Source of the DNA: Hyaloraphidium curvatum SAG 235-1
Lineage: Eukaryota > Fungi > Monoblepharomycota
DNA: 64,000 nucleotides
Assembly: GCA_025558095.1 (NCBI GenBank)
Contig: JAIVFI010000032.1
Span: 62,001-126,000 of the forward strand
Reading direction: 5' to 3'
Part shown: positions 735 through 38,214 of the stretch, in pieces
Position numbering within the stretch: the stretch's first letter is position 1
How the letters are laid out: each line of letters starts with the position of its first letter
Made by a program: the position numbers and the translations under genes
Notes under the pieces: model-generated
The model's database searches: none
Told to the model about the DNA's origin: nothing
Seen by the model: the letters and a program-made list of their open reading frames with translations, nothing else

Positions 735-3073
735 CTAGAGCTTGGCACCTGCACCGCCGCCTTTGAGCTGCTCTACCACGCCCTCTGAATTCATCCTCCT
801 GAGAATCTGTTCCCGTAGCTCTGGAAAAGCTCGTGAGATGTAATCCGAAACGTTGATGAGCGAGGGAACCAACCATTCTTCTTGAGCTTCCCGTTCTGAT
901 TCCGAGGAAGCCCGGCATCGTCTCCCTCGCCGATCCTCACGTCCACGTAGACCGGGACGGAGAACGCCGGAAGCAGCGTTCGGCAGAACTGCCTGATCGA
1001 TTCCGAGGTCGGCAGAGCCGTCGTCCGCCTGACCACGACGGCAGCGACGGGGAGCTCGCCGAGGGTAATGCCCGGATCGGGGATACCAATCGCGCCCTGC
1101 AGGCCCGGCGTCTCGTCAAATTCTGAACAGTCAGTTGACAAGCAGAACACTCACGGCATCCCAGACTCCGGGAAGCCTGTAAAGGGCTTCTTCGATCGAC
1201 ACAGTGTAGATGTTCTGGACGGGTTCAGTTAGTACAAGCCGTTCCGAATAAACGGAAGCCTCACCTCGCCCCCTCGCACTATCATCTCCTTGCTTCGATC
1301 TACTAGGTACACAAAACCCTCCTTGTCGATGTAGCCGACGTCCCCTGTCGAATCGGGGCGCATCAGATGCTCCAAACAAGATCTGGCGCAGATCCACCCA
1401 CCCGTGTGGAACCAACCGCCACGGAAGGCCCGCTTCGTCGCCTCGGGATTCTTGTAGTACTCCTGCGAGGCCCGTCAGCCGCCGTCCCATGCTCGGTACC
1501 TCTTCTCACTAACCTTGATCACATTTGCTCCGCGGAAGCACAGCTCACCAACTTCACCGACGGGCACCTCGCGATCCTGGTGATCGGGGGAGACAGAGTC
1601 CCAGTCGGTGATCTCGACGACTGCGAGGAGGGAGTCTTCAACGAACGGCACGTAAGCTTGGCCTGTTGACTCACTCTTCATCTCCGAGACGGGATTGAGC
1701 TTTCCCACGGAGCCTGGGTGGGTCAGGTAGTCATCTCCAGCGATCGAAACATTGTTCGAGCTCTCGGTCAGGCCGTCTGTCACGGACGATGGTCAGCACG
1801 TCCAGCCAAAAGAAGATCTTTCAGACCAACATCCTTGTCCAATTGAGCAGCCCGGGAAGACTTCGCGCAGCTTGTCAACGAGCGCCGCAGGGCAAGGTGC
1901 GCCGCCATAGCTGAGGGAGGTCACGCACGAAAGGTCCATCTCCTGTCCAGAGCGCTTGGCCTTTTCGATCGCGTCGAGGATGTTGTAGAACATCGTCGGC
2001 ACCCCGCCAATGGAGTTCACGCGCAAGTGGGATGTGACTCGCAAGCAATCAGCGGCGTTCCATTTGTAGAGGAAGACTACGGTTCCGCCGGTGAAGGTGG
2101 AGCCACCCAGGCGCGACTTCGTCGCCGTGATGTGGAACAGGGGCGTTGTCAGCACCTGCGCCTTGACGGGATCCGTCGCCTTTGGCATGGGCGGCATTCC
2201 CGCGAGGCCCCCAGCCTTCTTCACGGCCGCATGCACGCCGCGGTACAGGGCCGTCAGGGGAGTCTGACAGTAGCTCCGGTTGGTCCCCAAACATCCTTTC
2301 GGGAAGCCGCTAGTCCCAGAAGAAAAAAAGAGCGTGGTCGCTTCGTCCGGATCCATCTCCGCAGGGCCCGGTCCCAATGGCGCTGGCATACCGCTCCGTC
2401 GAGCAGGCTCAAGGTGCGGAGCGACGAAGCTTTGAAAGTCCGAGTAGAATGGAGACGACGGCAGTGCCAAGCCATCGAGGAAGGATTCGGGGAATATGGA
2501 TATGATCTTGCGAAGCCCGTGCTTCTCTCGCAAGCGGTCGAGCGAGCCTGCAGCTATGAAACGCGCCAGACGCTCGCCGTCGGCGATCAGAATGACGGGC
2601 TCTCCGACGGTGAGGCAATACTCCATGTCCTTCGCAGGCAGCCAGGCGTTGATGGGCGAGACAACGCACCCGATCGATACGACGGCCCAGAACGAGACGA
2701 TCCATTCGATGCAGTTCCTGGCCGCAATGGCAACTCGGTCTCCACGCTGCAAACCACTCGCTTTGAAGGCGAGCGCAAGAGCCGCGCTCTGCTCGTGTGC
2801 CTCCCGGTACGTGAGCGTCCGAGGATTGAGAAGTCGCGGATCCGAAGGTCCCGAGAGGGAAGACGCAGAGTTGTCGATGAACGTCAAGTACGGTTTGTCT
2901 CCGTTCGCCGCCGAGTCCAACCAAAGGCTCCTCATTGACCGGTTCGCGTGCTTCCACGCGTTCATTTCAATGCCGCGGACAACGACGCGCGTGATCTCGA
3001 ACGGGCTCCCCGAGCCCGGTGCCGTGAGAAGACGACGCACGTCATTGTCGGTGAGCGCGGGCGGTCCAACCAT
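735..3073 (-). CDS. AMP-dependent acyl-CoA synthetase/ligase (FadD-like), multi-exon, C-terminal AKL
   Basis: Adenylation motifs [30 protein letters not shown] and [11 protein letters not shown] spread over ORFs 1793-3160, 1475-1783 and 791-1150. The last exon splices to ...GGGAGAKL* (TAG at 735-737). Confidence 0.9.
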
Positions 3074-30872: not shown

Positions 30873-33626
30873 TTAGCGCGCACCGCCCGCCGCTTCCCCG
30901 TCCCCCTCCTCCTCGGGGTCGACCTTGGGCCCGCGGTACTTTTCCGGGATATCGTAGTCGATCGCCTCCATCTCCTCCCTCAGCGCGCGGATCTCCTCCC
31001 GCAGCAGCCTCACCGACCTCGCCGGCGCCACCTCGGCCCCATCCCCCGCCCCCTCCCCGCCCGCCGTGCCCGCATCCGCGGCCGCCTCCCCGGCCCACTC
31101 CACCCCCACGTCCGTCTCGAGCACCCCCAACCTCCTCTCCAGCTCCCCCACCCTCTCCCGCAGCGGCGCCTTCCTCCCCTCCCTCCACGCCTCCACCTCC
31201 CTCCGCACAACCTCCCCGACCACCCACGGATGCGCCGCCACGATCCCGTCCGTGCCCACCCTCTCCACCGCCCTCTTCCCCGCGCCGGCATCCCCGCCCC
31301 CGACCCCGTCCTCGGCAAGCCCGCCCCCCAAGTTGCCGGAAAGCACCCTCAAAACCCACGACACCTTGTCCGCCCACCACTTCTCCCACGTCCGCCCGTT
31401 GAACGCCATCACCTCGCTCAGCGGCATCTCGTACGGCAGATGCACGCCGCACAGTTCGGCGTAGCCGCACACGTAGGCCACGCAGTTGGAACTGGTGACC
31501 TGGTACGCCACGGTGCCCCTTTCGCGGTCGCGGACGATCTTGCGGCGCACTTTTTCGGCGTCCCCGGCGTCGATCCCGATCGAGAGGCAGCGCGCGACGT
31601 TTTCCCCGCCCCTGTGCCCCCGGAGTTCATCAGCACGGGCCCCAACGGCACCGGCGCATCCGCAGCAGGCTCACCAGAACTCGCTCACGTCAGGGCTCTG
31701 CACCGCCCCCTGCCTCCTCTTGAGCGGGTACCTGAGCCACTCCCAGTACCCCCTCCCCTCGGGCCTGTACAGCCCCACGCTGACGATCCCCCCCTGCGGG
31801 TCCTTCAGCCTCAGCCAGGCGTGGTCGCCGTTGATCCGCGGGCCCAGGGGGTGCAGCAGCGCGCACACGTCGAGGACGTGCCGCCGGCCCCAGGGGGGAG
31901 GGTGGTCCGCGTCGTCGGGGAAGGTGGGGGTGCGGGTGAGGGAGACGAAGGGCGAGGGGGAGACCTGCGTCGTCGTCCTCGGCGAAGGGGGCGGCGGCGC
32001 GCGCACGCGGGTGAAGGCGGCGAGGTCCCTCCAGTCGTAGAACCCCGAATTTATGATGCCCTTGTCCGAGTACCGGCCCTTCATCTGCATCACCCCGCCC
32101 CTGCCGGGTGCGACCTCGATCTTGGGCTCGGCAAGCGGCCACGGCGTCCACTCCCCGTACAGCAGCACCGACACCTCCAGCTCCGGCGGCGGCCCCACGC
32201 GCAGGCGGTGCCGGTAAATGTACAGGTACCGCCAGAGGTGGTTGTTTGCCGCGAACTCGGCGAAGGATGGGTTGGCGCGGAGCACGCCGGGCGGGACGCC
32301 GAGCTTGCCCGCGCGCACGCGCTCCTCGAGTTCGCGACGGGCGGGATCGGCGTCGGGGCCGCGGGGGGCGCGCTTGGCGACGCCGGATGCGAGCTGCAGG
32401 GTCTGGTCCTCCATGGCCGCGGGGATGGGGGCGCCCTCGCGGCGGGCGAGGATGGAGGTGAATGTGGTGAGGACGGCGACCATGGTGGGCGCGGAGAGGC
32501 CGAGGTGGTTGCCCGACGGGTTGGGTGGGGAACGCGACCGCGGGCGGCGCAGGGGGAGCGAGGGGTCGGCGTCCGAGATGTCGGAAGGGGTGTCCGATTG
32601 GGCGGAAGACATCGAGGAGGCACGCCGTGCGGGCGGCGAGAGCAGGAAAGGGTCGGGCGAGTCGGGCGAGAGCGGCGGGGAGGTCGTGGGAGGGGAATGC
32701 GACGGATCGAGGTCCGGTCGCGGTGCCGCGTCGGGATCCGGCGTACCAGGAAGCCGCAATATCTCCCCCGCCCGTGCGCGCAGCGTGCCCACCAGATCCC
32801 CCGCTATCTTGCGCGCCTGGCGCTGCGTCCGCAGGGCGCGCGAGCGCACGCGCCCGAGGACTAGCACGGGCGCCGAGGGGTCGTACGCGGGGGGTAGCTG
32901 GAACGACGCCTCGACCAGCTGCGCGGGTACCGCGGAGCCGACCTCGGCCAGGTCGTCGAGGAATGCGGTCGGCGGGGGGCCGCCGGGCTGCGGCTGCTTG
33001 AAGTACTCGAAGTTGTGCAGCGGCAGCGAGGGCGTGGCGTAGTGCAGGTAGGCGAGGCAGCGGACCGTCGAGGCGAGCCGGGCCAGCAGCTCGCCGGTCC
33101 CCGTGCCAGCGTCCAGCTGTGCCGCGATGTAGCGCGGAACGGCGTCGGCGAGCAGCAGTCTCAGCGCCGCGCAACTCGCGCTGTCATGACCACACGGGCG
33201 CAGCTCCAGGGAGATGGTCGGCGTCCCCTTCGCCTCGTGCGGCGTCTGCGGCGGCCGGGTCCCCCACGCGGAGCGCAGGAACGGAAGCCACGCGACAAGA
33301 GCGTCGAACGCGTGCTGCAGCATGGTCCGGGCCGAGCGGGGCCGGCGCACGACGACCTCCGTCGCGCTGTCTCCCCCGTCAGCGTCCGCGTCGCTGTCCC
33401 CGCCCCCATTCGGGCCCTCCGCGTCCGACCTCCCGATGAACACGGTCGCGACCTCGTCGCGCGGGTCGGCCAGCCGGTGCTTCCGCCCTCGCCGCGCCGC
33501 TGCCAGCAGGAACGCCGCCGCCGCGTTGCTCGCCGGAGCCGGGGGAGGCGCACCGGCGAGCAGCAGCCTCGCAACCGCCCATGCCAGCAGTGCAGACGCC
33601 AGCACCGCTAAGACGACCGCGTACAT
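30873..33626 (-). CDS. Membrane-anchored hypothetical protein with a permuted papain/NlpC-P60-like C-terminal motif and a coiled coil
   Basis: N-terminal TM helix MYAVVLAVLASALLAWAVARLLL; GDHAWLRL...SVGLY...SPDVSEFW, then an intron, then YQVTSSNCVAYV; coiled coil VRLLREEIRALREEM. Confidence 0.65.
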
Positions 33627-33894
33627 GGCGGCTGCGGCGGGATTCGGGCCAGAGGATCGGAAGTTGTCCACAGTCCAGTCCGTGCGTCTGAACTCCTCTG
33701 CATGCCTTCGATGTGCCCAACATCCTCCACGAGAGCGGGCAAGTAGGATGATGCGACAAGCGAAGCTTCACTCCTCCATATATATCGACAACATACACCA
33801 GTGCCCGGAAATCCAATGGCTTCTCGCAACCGCATACTCTTTCACTCGCCCAGCACTCACGCATACCGACCACATAAAGAACGGCCCCGATTCT

Positions 33895-36333
33895 TCAGGA
33901 AAAGTTGACCCGGCTCTCATCCTTGCCGGCGACGTGCAGGTTCTTCGACACCGGGCACCCCTGGATCGCGTGCGCGGGATCAGCTTGGCCCTGCCAACGC
34001 GGGAACGATCGGCCCACCTGCATCCGCTCCACGATGTACGGCACGTCCTCCGCCGTGGGGCTCCCGCTGGTGAGCTTGGCCGAGAACTCCACCTCGAGGT
34101 CGTGCAGCCCCCAGTCGATCGCCGAGACGGTCATGGTGCCCTCGGCCGCCGCAAAGAGCAGCCCGCGCTCGGCGGCGTTCATGAAGAAGTAGAGGTGCTT
34201 GCAGGTGAAGATGGCGTACGCAAAGATGATGAAACCCGGCGAGTCGATGCTGAGGTCGAAAGGCTTCCACGCGCCGTCGTCGGCAAGCTGGTCGACGGTG
34301 CGGCTCAGCACCTTGTTGTTCTCGCCGTGCGTCGTGGACATGCGGAACTGCCAGGTGCGCGCGGGCTTGGTCACCGCCGTCACGGTCGCATACTGCGCCG
34401 GGTAGAGCGAGGTTTCGAGGGCCTTGAGGAAGGAGTTGCGCCCCGCGATCGGGAGCAGGGCGCAGATCCCGGGCACGTACGCGGACGTGAAGCTCTCGGG
34501 GTCCACGGCGACGATCTTGCGGATGACCTCCTTGGCTTCGGCGGGGGTGAAGCTCGTAGGCAGGATGGGGTTGATGACTTCCTCCTCGGCAAGCTGGTGC
34601 GCCCGGTTGCCGGCACAGAACTTGCGCAGCGCCTCCATGGCGGCCGCAAAGTCCGCATCGGACTCGACGGCCTTGTCTAGGAGGCCGAGGAGCGCCGGAC
34701 GGCCCGTGGCGCTGTTCTTGTGGTCGTCCATGAAGCGATCGGCCATCCCGGCGTGCTTGGCGTTGACGGCGGGGAAGTAGGCCTTGTCCTCGATCGCGGC
34801 GTGCAGCTTCATGAGGAGAAACAGCCGGTCGGCCTCTGCCCGGATCTCGGGCATCTTGTCGCGGCCCTTGGTCTTCGTCGACTCCGCGAGGTCGTCGAGC
34901 GCCTTGAAGAGGGCCTGGTGGCTCTGCACCATGAACTCGAACGGGCTAGCTTCCGCCTCGGCCATCTTCTCCTCGATCGCCGCCATCTGGTGCGCCGGCA
35001 GCGAGACCCGGAGCGCCTTCAGGAAGCCCGCCTTCCCTGCCGGCTCCAGGAGCGCGGAGATGCCGGGAACGTACTGCCCCGCGAAGCCGGCAAAGTCCAC
35101 GTCGGCGATCGCGCGGACGACCTCCCTCGCCTCGGCCCGGGTGAAGCTCGCGGGCAGGTGCGGGTTGATCACCTCCTCCTCGGCGAGCTGGTGCGCCCGG
35201 TTGCCGGCGCAGAACTTGCGGAGGGCCTCCATGGCCGCGGCAAAGTCGGCGTCCGACTCGGGGGCCTTGTTGAGCAGCGCGAGCAGGGCGGGGCGGCCCG
35301 TCGCGCTGTTCTTGTGGTCGTCCATGAAGCGATCGGCCATGTCGGGATGCTTGGCGTTGACGGCGGGGAAGTAGGCCTTGTCTTCGATGCCGGCGTGCAG
35401 CCTCATGAGGAGGAAGAGGCGGTCCGCCTCTGCCCTGATCTCGTCCATCCTGTCGCGGCCCTTGCTCGACGTCGAGGCAGACAGCTCGTCGAGCGCCCTG
35501 AAAAGGGCCTGGTGGCTCTGCACCATGAACTCGAACGGGTCAAACTCCGAGTCCGCGAGCTTTCCGTTGATCGCCGCCATCTGATCAGGAGGCAGCGACG
35601 CCTCGAGCGCCTTCATGAAGCTCTCCTTGCCCGCGGCGGGAAGCCGGGCGCAGATGCCGGGGACGTACTGCCCCGCGAAGCTCTCAAAGTCCAGGTCGGC
35701 GATCTTGCGCACGACCTCCTTGGCTTCGGCGGTCGTGAAGCTCGTGGGGAGGTGGGGGTTGATCACGTCCTCCTCCGCGAGCTGGTGGGCCCGGTTGCCC
35801 GCGCAGAACTTGCGCAGCGCCTCCATGGCGGCCGTAAAGTCCGCGTCCGACTCGGCAGCCTTGTTGAGGAGCGCAAGCAGGGCCGGACGGCCCGTGGCGC
35901 TGTTCTTGTGATCGTCCATGAAGCGGTCGGCCATGGTCGGGTGCTTGGCATTGACTGCGGGGAAATAGGCCTTATCCTCGATTGCCGCGTGGAGCTTCAT
36001 GAGGAGGAAGAGCTGGTCGGCTTCGGCCCGTATCTCGCGCATCTTGTCGCGGCCCTTGCTCTTGGTCGACTCCGCGAGGTCGTCGAGCGCCTTGAACAGC
36101 GACTGGTGGCTCTGCACCATGAATTCGAAGGGCTCCTCTGCGTCGGGAGCATTGGCAGACTTTGCAGCCGCGGCCGCCTGGGGAGGGTCCGCTATTTGCG
36201 GGCGGGGGATGTTGACCAGGGAGACGGGCGCCGCCGCGGCCACGCCCTTCGCCCCCGGTGCCTGCGCCACCGGGGTCGGCTTGGCGACGGGAGCGACGGG
36301 CTCGCGCTCGTTGCAGCAGTTCACGTTGCCCAT
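33895..36333 (-). CDS. Triple hemerythrin-like (HHE) repeat protein with an N-terminal acylation motif and a C-terminal OsmC-like domain
   Basis: Starts MGNVNCC. Three 198-aa units each carry SHQ, HAA/GIED, DDH and HQLAEE. The C-domain reads PGFIIFAYAIFTCKH...YIVERMQ|GCPVSKNL after removing a short in-frame intron at ~33961-34017. Confidence 0.85.
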   Translation of the reverse strand: MGNVNCCNEREPVAPVAKPTPVAQAPGAKGVAAAAPVSLVNIPRPQIADPPQAAAAAKSANAPDAEEPFEFMVQSHQSLFKALDDLAESTKSKGRDKMREIRAEADQLFLLMKLHAAIEDKAYFPAVNAKHPTMADRFMDDHKNSATGRPALLALLNKAAESDADFTAAMEALRKFCAGNRAHQLAEEDVINPHLPTSFTTAEAKEVVRKIADLDFESFAGQYVPGICARLPAAGKESFMKALEASLPPDQMAAINGKLADSEFDPFEFMVQSHQALFRALDELSASTSSKGRDRMDEIRAEADRLFLLMRLHAGIEDKAYFPAVNAKHPDMADRFMDDHKNSATGRPALLALLNKAPESDADFAAAMEALRKFCAGNRAHQLAEEEVINPHLPASFTRAEAREVVRAIADVDFAGFAGQYVPGISALLEPAGKAGFLKALRVSLPAHQMAAIEEKMAEAEASPFEFMVQSHQALFKALDDLAESTKTKGRDKMPEIRAEADRLFLLMKLHAAIEDKAYFPAVNAKHAGMADRFMDDHKNSATGRPALLGLLDKAVESDADFAAAMEALRKFCAGNRAHQLAEEEVINPILPTSFTPAEAKEVIRKIVAVDPESFTSAYVPGICALLPIAGRNSFLKALETSLYPAQYATVTAVTKPARTWQFRMSTTHGENNKVLSRTVDQLADDGAWKPFDLSIDSPGFIIFAYAIFTCKHLYFFMNAAERGLLFAAAEGTMTVSAIDWGLHDLEVEFSAKLTSGSPTAEDVPYIVERMQVGRSFPRWQGQADPAHAIQGCPVSKNLHVAGKDESRVNFS
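34390..36135 (-). repeat. Three intragenic tandem repeats, 594-bp period
   Basis: The anchor CTGGTGGCTCTGCACCATGAA occurs at 34915, 35509 and 36103, each 594 bp apart. Confidence 0.95.
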
Positions 36334-37005
36334 GTTTCCGCCTTTTGGCGGGGTTTGCGTGGGTTCAGGCCGGGCGGGTTTTTCGCTCCGCGCACAGCCA
36401 GCAAGCCCGGCTCGTGAGGAGAGCAAAATCAAGATCTTGCGCCTCCCGCGCATACGGCCCCCCCCGAATGAAAACGGCCACGCAGAGTTGGAAAAATGAA
36501 TGATTGAAGAGCTCGCCACATGGCTCGGGATGCCCGTAGGAAGAGGCGAGGAATAGGCACGCCACTACGCGCACGCTAGCGGCAGTGCGGAAGTTCCCCT
36601 CACTCGATGACGTCGTCCCCTTAACTAGTGCAAGATCGTCGCCAGAACTGCCGCGCCCGCGGGGGTGAAGTCTTCGCTTCCCACTATCACCTCCCTCGGG
36701 ATCGACGACGTGATGTGAAACGATGTGGCACGCTCCAATCGAGGTCGCAGTGCTCTTCGGAGGGACACTTGGCTTCTCCGCGAGGCTGAGCTCGGTCCCC
36801 TGCCGTTGCAGTACGTGCTCTCCAGGCAAGATGAAAGCGTCGTAGATGCGATAAAAATGCTTCGATAGCCCTTCTCTGCCGATCCGGCCTCGGGATTGGC
36901 CCAAGCGTCGAGGGTGTTGTTGACGCGGCGATTCGACGCCGCTTGCCAACCCACGCAAACAACGCCCACCTCCCCGGTCAGGGCCTCCCTGTCGCCGCCA
37001 CCGCG

Positions 37006-38214
37006 ATGCTGCGCCCCTTGGCGGCTGCTCCGCGGATCCCCATCGCCCTCGCCCGGCCCTTCGCCGGCCCCGCGCCCACCGTACCGCGCGAACGACGCGT
37101 CCCGAAAGTTCCGCACGCGGTCCGCCCCCTCTCCACCTCGCCGCGGATCGACCTGTCGACCCTCGGCGCCGGCAGCGTCACCCTGCACCTTCCCACCGCG
37201 AGCTCGCCGACGCCGGGGGTGGCATTCATCGTGCTCCGGAACCAGAAGCGGCGGAACGCGATTTCGGGCCGCATGATGGTGGAGCTGTCCTCGGCCCTTG
37301 AGGAGCTGGGGCGGGCGGTCGACCGGATGGAGAGGAAGGATGCCGGGTTGCCGGCTGCGGACGGCAAGGGGTTCGGGGATAAGGACGGGGAGGTGGTGAG
37401 CGCTGTTGTCATTGCCGGCGAGGGCGGGACATGGTGCGCCGGATTCGGTGGGCTTTGCTCTCCCAAACCGAATGAGGCAGGAATCTGACGCGGTCGGACG
37501 ATAGACCTCTCGTCGGACAGGGAGCTGGTGCTCACGCAGGCCTTTGCAAGGACCATGGCGACGCACATGCACGCGACGCTGCACAAGCTCCGGTCCCTGC
37601 CGCTGCTCACGATCGCCGGGGTGTCCGGCTTCGCCATTGGTGGCGGGGCCGAGCTGGCGACCGCGGCCGACTTCCGTGTGTGGAGCCCGGGCGCGCGGCT
37701 TCGCTTCGTGCAGCTCAAGATGGGAGTCGTCCCCGGCTGGGGCGGCGCGACGCGGCTGGCGGACCTCGTCGGTCAGCGGACTGCTCTGCGGCTCCTGTGC
37801 TCGGCGGAAACCGTGGACGCGGGCAAGGCGTTGGCCCTGGGGCTCGCCGATCACATCGGCGACAACGGACCCGAGATCGACGTGCCCGGCATGGAAGCCG
37901 ACCCCGTAGCCAGGGCCGCTGCAGCCTGGGCGGTGGATTCGTTCGTGTTCCGGGACCCGCCGCCGCCGCCGTCGACTCTCGTCGGGCCCGAGGACTTTGA
38001 CGATTCCGAGCTGGCCTCGCTGGCGAAGAAGGAGGAGCCGCCTCGCGCCCGCAATTCGCCCCTTGCCTTGCGATCGATGAAGCGGTCTATTGCGACGCCC
38101 GAGAGGCTGGCCGCGGAGAGCAAGGGGTACGAGAGGGAGCTCGAAGAGTTTACCCAGAACTGGGGTTCCCACTATAACTTGGAGGCCGTTCAGGCTCTCC
38201 GCAAGCAGCTGTAG
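37006..38214 (+). CDS. Enoyl-CoA hydratase/crotonase family protein (ECHDC1-like) with a mitochondrial-type presequence
   Basis: RRNAISGRMM, WCAG(intron)DLS, GFAIGGGAELATAADFR and FVQLKMGVVPGWGG; Arg/Ala/Pro-rich N-terminus. Confidence 0.88.

Follow-up and report, generated by a model that had tools for sequence, protein, structure and literature searches.

A fungal gene from Hyaloraphidium curvatum that joins a candidate acylation motif, three hemerythrin-like units and an OsmC-like domain

The minus strand of a 64,000-nucleotide (nt) stretch of the Hyaloraphidium curvatum SAG 235-1 genome (the window, G000:C32:62001-126000; genome size 32 Mb) contains, at positions 33895-36333, one genuine fungal gene whose product combines in a single frame an N-terminus with a candidate acyl motif, a linker, three hemerythrin (HHE) units and a domain of the OsmC fold. 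This is a new domain architecture made from known parts, seen so far in one species. Within the fungi, H. curvatum belongs to an early-diverging lineage, the Monoblepharidomycetes. The protein, of 793 amino acids (aa), begins in translation of the interval with MGNVNCC and runs through three repeats into a C-terminal domain (C-domain); the open reading frame (ORF) as a whole extends over 33895-36519, and the GC content at third codon positions (GC3) was 0.91 over the coding sequence. The gene corresponds to the NCBI entry 'hypothetical protein DFJ74DRAFT_359242 [Hyaloraphidium curvatum]' (P0001), an 833-aa model on a 572-kb contig for which PF01814 is the sole annotation. The fusion does not depend on splicing, because the junction lies within one exon.

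Hemerythrin units and gene structure

The whole protein matched the Pfam Hemerythrin family PF01814 with 95.1 bits (E 5.8e-27; gathering threshold 25.3), and the first unit alone scored 37.4 bits (E 4.2e-9). The three repeats, beginning at aa 68, 266 and 464, are spaced by exactly 198 aa (594 nt); this spacing lies beyond the period limit of 500 in Tandem Repeats Finder, and the repeat was detected by a separate repeat search. The first-pass annotation, made from the DNA letters before any database search, had described three near-identical units of 198 aa. Their number and length were confirmed, but pairwise identity was 76-82% at the protein level and 79-82% at the DNA level, so the units are not near-identical. 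Synonymous divergence (dS) between the units was 0.55-0.69 and the ratio of non-synonymous to synonymous divergence (dN/dS) was 0.16-0.32, indicating that the triplication is old and that each copy is under purifying selection. A recent or homogenised triplication is ruled out by the same dS values.

Each of the three units carries the complete ligand set H…HxxxE…H…HxxxE, as had been read from the sequence at the outset. The ligands fall at H(9), H(48)xxxE(52), H(75) and H(116)xxxE(120) of the unit, within the motifs SHQ, HA[AG]IE, DDH and HQLAE. An AlphaFold2 model of the unit, built from a 7-sequence alignment, reached a predicted local distance difference test score (pLDDT) of 95.6 and comprised four long bundle helices with four shorter helices, the latter forming an extension of about 65 aa. 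Foldseek matched this model to 6q09 and 2p0n with a probability of 1.0 and to FBXL5 with a probability of 0.94-0.98, at weak E-values of 0.15-1.1; in a sequence search of the PDB the best match was again 6q09, at a marginal E of 0.1. A fold search of the ESM Atlas with the hemerythrin unit gave template modelling scores below 0.5 throughout, a feature search of the same resource gave no usable result, and a metagenome scan with the hemerythrin alignment found no relative. The Pfam score, the ligand set and the predicted four-helix bundle matching 6q09, 2p0n and FBXL5 together uphold the assignment of the repeats as hemerythrin-like domains.

The best match in both sequence and fold is to the mycobacterial hemerythrin-like proteins (HLPs), Mka HLP (6q09) and Rv2633c, which share the ligand set and an extra C-terminal helix or helices. 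In Mka HLP the ligands H11/H45/E49/H71/H105/E109 supply each iron with two His, and two Glu bridge the pair (PMC6993866). Where Mka HLP has a Tyr ligand to Fe2, the fungal units have an invariant Phe in the alignment, at an overall identity of about 18%; the extension consists of four helices here rather than one, and the fungal unit is triplicated, probably acylated, and fused. The di-iron site of E. coli YtfE/RIC is likewise built from 4 His and 2 Glu (PMC6993866), but the fungal protein lacks the ScdA_N domain, no sequence match to YtfE/RIC was listed, and the architecture differs. The ligand pattern had initially been described as of the FBXL5/BRUTUS type, which held only in part: FBXL5 is among the fold matches, but its di-iron site is formed by 4 His and 3 Glu (PMC6993866) against 4 His and 2 Glu here. 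BRUTUS/HRZ of plants and FBXL5 of animals also have eukaryotic HHE domains, and BRUTUS too has three in tandem. Those proteins are soluble iron sensors with RING/CHY or F-box/LRR ubiquitin-ligase modules, whereas the protein described here has no ligase and would instead combine a thiol-redox fold with a lipid anchor.

A short intron had been proposed just before the GCPVS motif of the C-domain. P0001 lacks exactly the 19 codons of 33961-34017, matching this intron, and none of 50 C-domain relatives has an insertion at the corresponding site in the alignment. Splicing recreates the family motif RMxxCPVS[RK]NL and changes the Pfam OsmC E-value from 0.06-0.09 to 0.0015 (the spliced C-domain was searched as deposited in P0001, the unspliced exons from the window sequence); GC3 within the intron is 0.74. 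The 57-nt intron is accepted as real because the deposited model removes it and the homologues have no insertion there. If retained, it would add 19 aa between R121-M-Q and G-C125, just ahead of the second conserved cysteine, which could give a second isoform whose thiol site is changed.

Table 1. Features of the hemerythrin/OsmC-like fusion gene, in window coordinates.
Feature	Position	Strand	Basis
Exon 1 from the MGNVNCC ATG: acyl motif, linker, three hemerythrin units, first 123 aa of the C-domain	34018..36333	-	One uninterrupted frame
Spliceosomal intron, 57 nt, GTGGGC…CTGAT…CAG	33961..34017	-	In frame, no stop codon
Exon 2: GCPVSKNLHVAGKDESRVNFS and stop codon	33895..33960	-	Sequence, P0001
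MGNVNCC, candidate Gly2 N-myristoylation and Cys6/Cys7 palmitoylation motif	36313..36333	-	PROSITE PS00008, Kozak context, homologues
Pro/Ala-rich linker, about 59 aa	36136..36312	-	Read from the sequence
Hemerythrin-HHE unit 1, predicted four-helix di-iron bundle with an extension of four shorter helices	35539..36132	-	Pfam, AlphaFold2, Foldseek
Hemerythrin-HHE unit 2	34945..35538	-	Pfam, repeat comparison, ligands
Hemerythrin-HHE unit 3	34387..34944	-	Pfam, repeat comparison, ligands
OsmC/Ohr-like two-cysteine C-domain, split by the intron	33898..34386	-	Family, fold, dimer prediction
Forty in-frame codons counted as coding by the deposited model (MRGRRKILILLSS…), probably 5' untranslated region	36334..36453	-	GC3, Kozak context

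The OsmC-like C-terminal domain

The C-domain, about 144 aa long, contains two cysteines that had been picked out from the start, one in FTCKH (TGC at 34201-34203) and one, after splicing, in GCPVS (TGC at 33955-33957). Both were found at conserved family positions, as C62 and C125, 63 residues apart. A Cys pair about 60 residues apart is the hallmark of OsmC/Ohr proteins (PMC5384416). No NCBIfam family covers the C-domain, and a word-indexed protein search with it gave no match. When 1.84 billion representative sequences were searched exhaustively with phmmer, 108 proteins were retrieved at E<1e-3, including 50 at E<1e-10; apart from P0001, essentially all of the 108 are stand-alone proteins of 130-190 aa. 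Two longer matches, P0075 (ATP-synt_ab with an OsmC fragment) and P0091 (TauE with a fragment), were set aside as probable gene-call chimeras without a hemerythrin domain. Across the 51 aligned sequences P126 and N130 are invariant, and at least 90% of members conserve C62, C125, W40, F52 and R121; 32 of the 51 match Pfam OsmC at E<0.01, the best at 7.5e-9.

The AlphaFold2 model of the C-domain had a pLDDT of 97.4. All of its top Foldseek matches were OsmC/Ohr proteins, at a probability of 1.0. Alignment with VIA-align gave a Z score of 10.3 and a root mean square deviation of 3.0 over 118 aa to 3cje, an OsmC-like protein of Jannaschia, and the next eleven matches were also OsmC-like (Z 8.2-9.8). 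The Cys pair aligns with the cysteines of the OsmC chains 9wo1 and 2pn2, for which sequence matches in the PDB were marginal (E 0.2). The OsmC/Ohr-like reading first given to this domain was therefore borne out in fold and in the Cys pair. It was not borne out by Pfam at family level, where OsmC (PF02566) scored 19.4 bits (E 0.0015) against a gathering threshold of 27.5, nor by the catalytic residues: the catalytic Glu of Ohr/OsmC is absent, none being conserved about 10 residues ahead of C62, and neither the Ohr nor the OsmC position holds an invariant Arg. On strand 1 an Arg (R15) occurs commonly but not invariantly, and R121 is near-invariant but lies elsewhere than the catalytic Arg.

A catalytic Arg and a catalytic Glu are conserved in the Ohr and OsmC subfamilies but missing from a third group, termed 'Ohr-like' (PMC5384416). 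Because the Cys pair is present, the catalytic Glu absent and no Arg invariant, and because the best fold matches are Ohr-like examples, the C-domain is classed here as a member of the OsmC superfamily of the Ohr-like kind. The known members of that group (3cje from Jannaschia, 2pn2 from Psychrobacter, 2egt from Aquifex, 1ml8 and Trichomonas TvOsmC; PMC5384416) have the same fold, at Z 9.2-10.3, with the Cys pair at homologous helix positions, the catalytic Glu missing and no invariant Arg at either catalytic position, as in the C-domain. The subfamily to which the C-domain belongs is distinct from them: it is mostly gammaproteobacterial, has its own conserved W40, F52, R121 and N130, and shows marginal sequence likeness to the solved members (E 0.2). 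The fungal sequence further differs in forming the C-terminal domain of a 793-aa eukaryotic protein rather than a stand-alone protein.

Structure prediction for two copies of the C-domain gave an interaction prediction score from aligned errors (ipSAE) of 0.80 against 0.00 for the best control, with at least 98% of contacts agreeing between runs and a partner pLDDT of at least 91; among solved structures, 21 of 30 homodimers and none of 23 monomers reached the mark set for a homodimer. The predicted interface is formed by residues 45-62 and 125-133, and both cysteines face the same segment of the partner. The C-domain is thus predicted to pair into an OsmC-type homodimer whose interface includes both cysteines, a prediction that may partly reflect memory of solved OsmC dimers.

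Relatives, start codon and candidate lipid anchor

In word-indexed protein searches the full protein matched only itself and the hemerythrin unit matched only P0119 and P0120. With a paralogue in the H. curvatum genome, three relatives of the hemerythrin subfamily were found, and all three keep the H…HxxxE…H…HxxxE set. The paralogue (L006; G000:C27:58131-61691, about 1046-2148, plus strand) has one HHE unit, 51-53% identical. P0119 consists of MGSC and two units separated by an intron, and is carried on a eukaryotic metagenome contig; P0120 consists of MGAC, a long Ala/Pro linker and one unit. No C-domain was found by tblastn in or near any of the three within the DNA at hand. Because these relatives lack the C-domain, the conserved core of the subfamily is the acyl motif, linker and hemerythrin unit or units, with the OsmC-like domain as an addition specific to this gene.

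Two of these loci have further features of their own. Exon 1 of the paralogue (1046-1173) reads as a classical signal peptide, MARIIALLWALFAVATVAVSPAAA…, and across a 101-nt GTAAGA…CAG intron (1174-1274) the frame continues through a Cys-rich stretch (CPCC…CPCC) into the HHE unit; the gene may encode a secreted di-iron hemerythrin-like protein. At the P0119 locus (L010, 6001-7310) a prokaryotic gene caller broke the two-unit gene where a short intron separates …FIFMD from MKLHARIED…; the same contig also bears a eukaryotic-type RNA-dependent RNA polymerase gene and a giant gene containing SH3.

The presence of an acyl motif depends on which start codon is used. The deposited start is the in-frame ATG at 36451-36453, 40 codons upstream of MGNVNCC. 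GC3 over these 40 codons is 0.65, compared with at least 0.75 in every 40-codon window of the coding sequence (mean 0.91). The Kozak context at MGNVNCC, AAACATGG, is strong, and that at the upstream ATG, CGTATGC, is weak. P0119 and P0120, the only two homologues found from other organisms, begin with MGSCTS and MGACLG at their own first in-frame ATG. Based on GC3, Kozak context and the MGxC starts of the two homologues, MGNVNCC is probably the true start. From it would follow N-myristoyl and palmitoyl anchoring: the N-termini of all three proteins fit the myristoylation pattern PS00008, G-{EDRKHPFYW}-x(2)-[STAGCN]-{P}, and all have Cys close to Gly2, at Cys6 and Cys7 in MGNVNCC and at Cys4 in P0119 (MGSC) and P0120 (MGAC). 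The Gly2/Cys acylation signature noted at the first reading therefore fits the pattern, recurs in both homologues and has the favoured start on its side, but is at odds with the deposited model. No Pfam family scored above threshold in the N-terminal 110 aa.

Were the deposited start used, the protein would begin MRGRRKILILLSSRAGLAGC… and would not be myristoylated; its leader might target the secretory pathway or an organelle, or leaky scanning might yield both starts. The NCBI/Joint Genome Institute model selects that ATG, the leader is basic and then hydrophobic, and the paralogue in the same genome has a clear signal peptide. However, the hydrophobic core of the leader spans merely about 6 residues, GC3 is lower there than in any coding window, the weak Kozak context contrasts with the strong one at MGNVNCC, and both homologues from other organisms open with MGxC, which leaves use of the upstream start unlikely. 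The same 40 codons hold LAGC, which resembles a bacterial lipobox (Pfam LPAM_1, E 0.22, below threshold); the resemblance is probably due to chance, because GC3 there is non-coding-like.

Dually acylated peripheral proteins such as Src-family kinases, G-alpha subunits, plant CBLs and Leishmania HASPB likewise combine an MG-x-x-x-C or MGxC start fitting PS00008 with a flexible linker. To our knowledge, no dually acylated protein has hemerythrin or OsmC domains.

Possible functions, origin and significance

The reading that we favour, at a probability of roughly 45% for all of its parts jointly, is that of a membrane-proximal redox-defence enzyme. Translation would start at MGNVNCC, Gly2 would be myristoylated and Cys6/7 palmitoylated, and the dual acylation together with the flexible tether would hold the protein at the cytosolic face of a membrane. 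Dimerisation through the C-domain would place six di-iron and two thiol sites in each membrane-bound dimer. Like Ohr-family enzymes, the Cys pair may reduce hydroperoxides, plausibly those of lipids, by switching between its thiol and disulfide forms, and the di-iron units may react with H2O2 or NO like the mycobacterial HLPs, or may poise or gate the thiol domain. The C-domain would have come from bacteria, been fused to a pre-existing acylated hemerythrin gene and then gained its intron. A redox-defence role is favoured because the Ohr family are Cys-based hydroperoxide reductases and because catalase and NO-peroxidase activities occur in the nearest relatives of the hemerythrin units: Ohr/OsmC proteins act on hydroperoxides by Cys-based peroxidase chemistry (PMC5384416, PMC5962072), and both activities have been described for mycobacterial HLPs (PMC6993866, PMC8913304).

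Several observations weigh against this redox-defence reading. The Pfam OsmC score falls below the gathering threshold, and the C-domain has neither the catalytic Glu nor an invariant Arg at the catalytic positions. Peroxidase activity of 'Ohr-like' proteins is itself disputed; for TvOsmC there is a report of such activity as well as a failure to reproduce it (PMC5384416). With the upstream start of the deposited model, myristoylation would be lost. So far a single species is known to have the fusion, and about 14 bacterial neighbourhoods of C-domain relatives show no conserved partner and no hemerythrin.

A sensor of iron, oxygen or redox state is an unlikely alternative, in which the di-iron units would report iron or oxygen through conformation or stability, as in FBXL5 and BRUTUS, and the OsmC-like domain would be a regulated output or thiol switch. 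The three tandem HHE domains resemble BRUTUS, the FBXL5 hemerythrin domain is among the fold matches (probability 0.94-0.98), catalysis may be poor given the missing Glu and the lack of an invariant Arg, and the in-frame intron could give a second isoform. Set against this, Pfam recognised no kinase, E3 ligase, cyclase or DNA-binding domain, the 4 His/2 Glu ligands are of the reactive Mka-HLP/YtfE type, and an output domain of any kind is absent from the homologues that have one or two hemerythrin units. The label 'sensor-effector', given to the fusion by the first-pass annotation, is speculation, because the protein has no signalling output domain.

A further reading, which we consider improbable, treats the gene as a 'Rosetta stone' fusion. 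The di-iron HHE modules would then be the direct redox partner of this Ohr-like subfamily, electrons or oxidising equivalents passing between the di-iron sites and the Cys pair, and the protein would be a lipoyl-independent, iron-coupled, membrane-anchored thiol detoxifier of peroxide or NO. If true, this would give a function to a gammaproteobacterial family of proteins of about 140 aa.

Handling of iron together with sulfur is a doubtful alternative. Here the hemerythrin units would act as RIC/YtfE-like iron donors or repair proteins and the Cys domain would carry or reduce sulfane sulfur or persulfide, in Fe-S repair or sulfur chemistry at the membrane. The YtfE-like pattern of 4 His and 2 Glu would suit such a role, as would the concentration of the C-domain family in metagenome-assembled genomes (MAGs) of Chromatiales and Thiotrichales and the position of some bacterial members next to YeeE/YedE-type sulfur transporters, a TauE fragment, DsrC, YgaP-like genes, FeoB and a CDGSH/4Fe-4S protein. 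Such neighbourhoods are, however, few and inconsistent, others containing kinases, MMPL transporters, an ECF sigma factor, FKBP or FGGY kinases, and the fungal protein carries neither an ScdA_N nor a flavin domain.

Every genomic context obtained for C-domain relatives is bacterial. P0003 shares 48% identity with the fungal domain, and scanning genomes with it gave 13 loci, 11 of them in MAGs of Gammaproteobacteria (Chromatiales, Thiotrichales, Arenicellales) and two in bins labelled Halobacteria. A quick, unrooted tree with most rows unlabelled places the fungal domain beside P0004, whose gene lies in a bacterial operon that also encodes YeeE/YedE-like transporters, and this pair adjoins the gammaproteobacterial clade; the tree backs bacterial nearest kin without pointing to a specific donor. 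GC3 of the fungal C-domain is 0.91-0.96, as in its host. Because of this host-like GC3, the spliceosomal intron and the exon held in common with hemerythrin unit 3, the C-domain is judged not to be contamination, and its presence is most simply explained by an old transfer followed by fusion. An artefact, whether an assembly or gene-model chimera or a contaminating C-domain, is highly improbable: bacterial closest relatives and an architecture known from one genome would fit it, but a single unbroken exon encodes both unit 3 and 123 aa of the C-domain, the C-domain is host-like in GC3 and is interrupted by a spliceosomal intron, and the contig is 572 kb long.

The bacterial loci show several arrangements of their own. 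In the two 'uncultured Halobacteria archaeon' bins (L017 and L021) the OsmC-like genes are 57-72% identical to P0003; in the quick tree only about 0.1 changes per column separate L021 from L020, a gammaproteobacterial locus, and L017 clusters with P0003 and with L018, likewise gammaproteobacterial, which points to mislabelled bins or recent transfer. In two gammaproteobacterial MAGs (L027, 1721-3757; L028, 531-2236) the OsmC-like gene follows a gene for an extracytoplasmic function (ECF) sigma factor and a 233-aa ORF that has no Pfam match and could be an anti-sigma factor, an arrangement that suggests stress-regulated expression. Elsewhere the OsmC-like locus overlaps YeeE/YedE-like sulfur-transport genes (L030, 308-1633), is divergent from FeoB (L013, 146-2763) or is convergent with an MMPL transporter gene (L016, L020 and L021). 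In the fungal window the flanking ORFs at 31671-33671 (minus strand) and 36943-37488 (plus strand) matched no Pfam family at E<0.01, and the GC content around the downstream 666-aa ORF was 0.69-0.70 in 2-kb windows.

The architecture had been put forward as unfamiliar from the literature, and no second example was found. Among the 1.84 billion representatives searched by phmmer with the C-domain there was no other long fusion, although more distant fusions of OsmC and hemerythrin could escape such a query, and literature searches returned no paper that connects hemerythrin to OsmC within a single protein, or to myristoylation. The significance of the gene is limited by the restriction of the fusion to one species so far and by a function that is so far a proposal. 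If the protein is made as modelled, it would be an example of a bacterial domain captured, provided with an intron and fused in a fungus, and would mark out lipid-anchored hemerythrin-like proteins as a small clade among early-diverging eukaryotes. The physical link between HHE units and a two-cysteine OsmC-like domain could then guide work on eukaryotic HHE proteins outside FBXL5 and BRUTUS, and on the 'Ohr-like' proteins.

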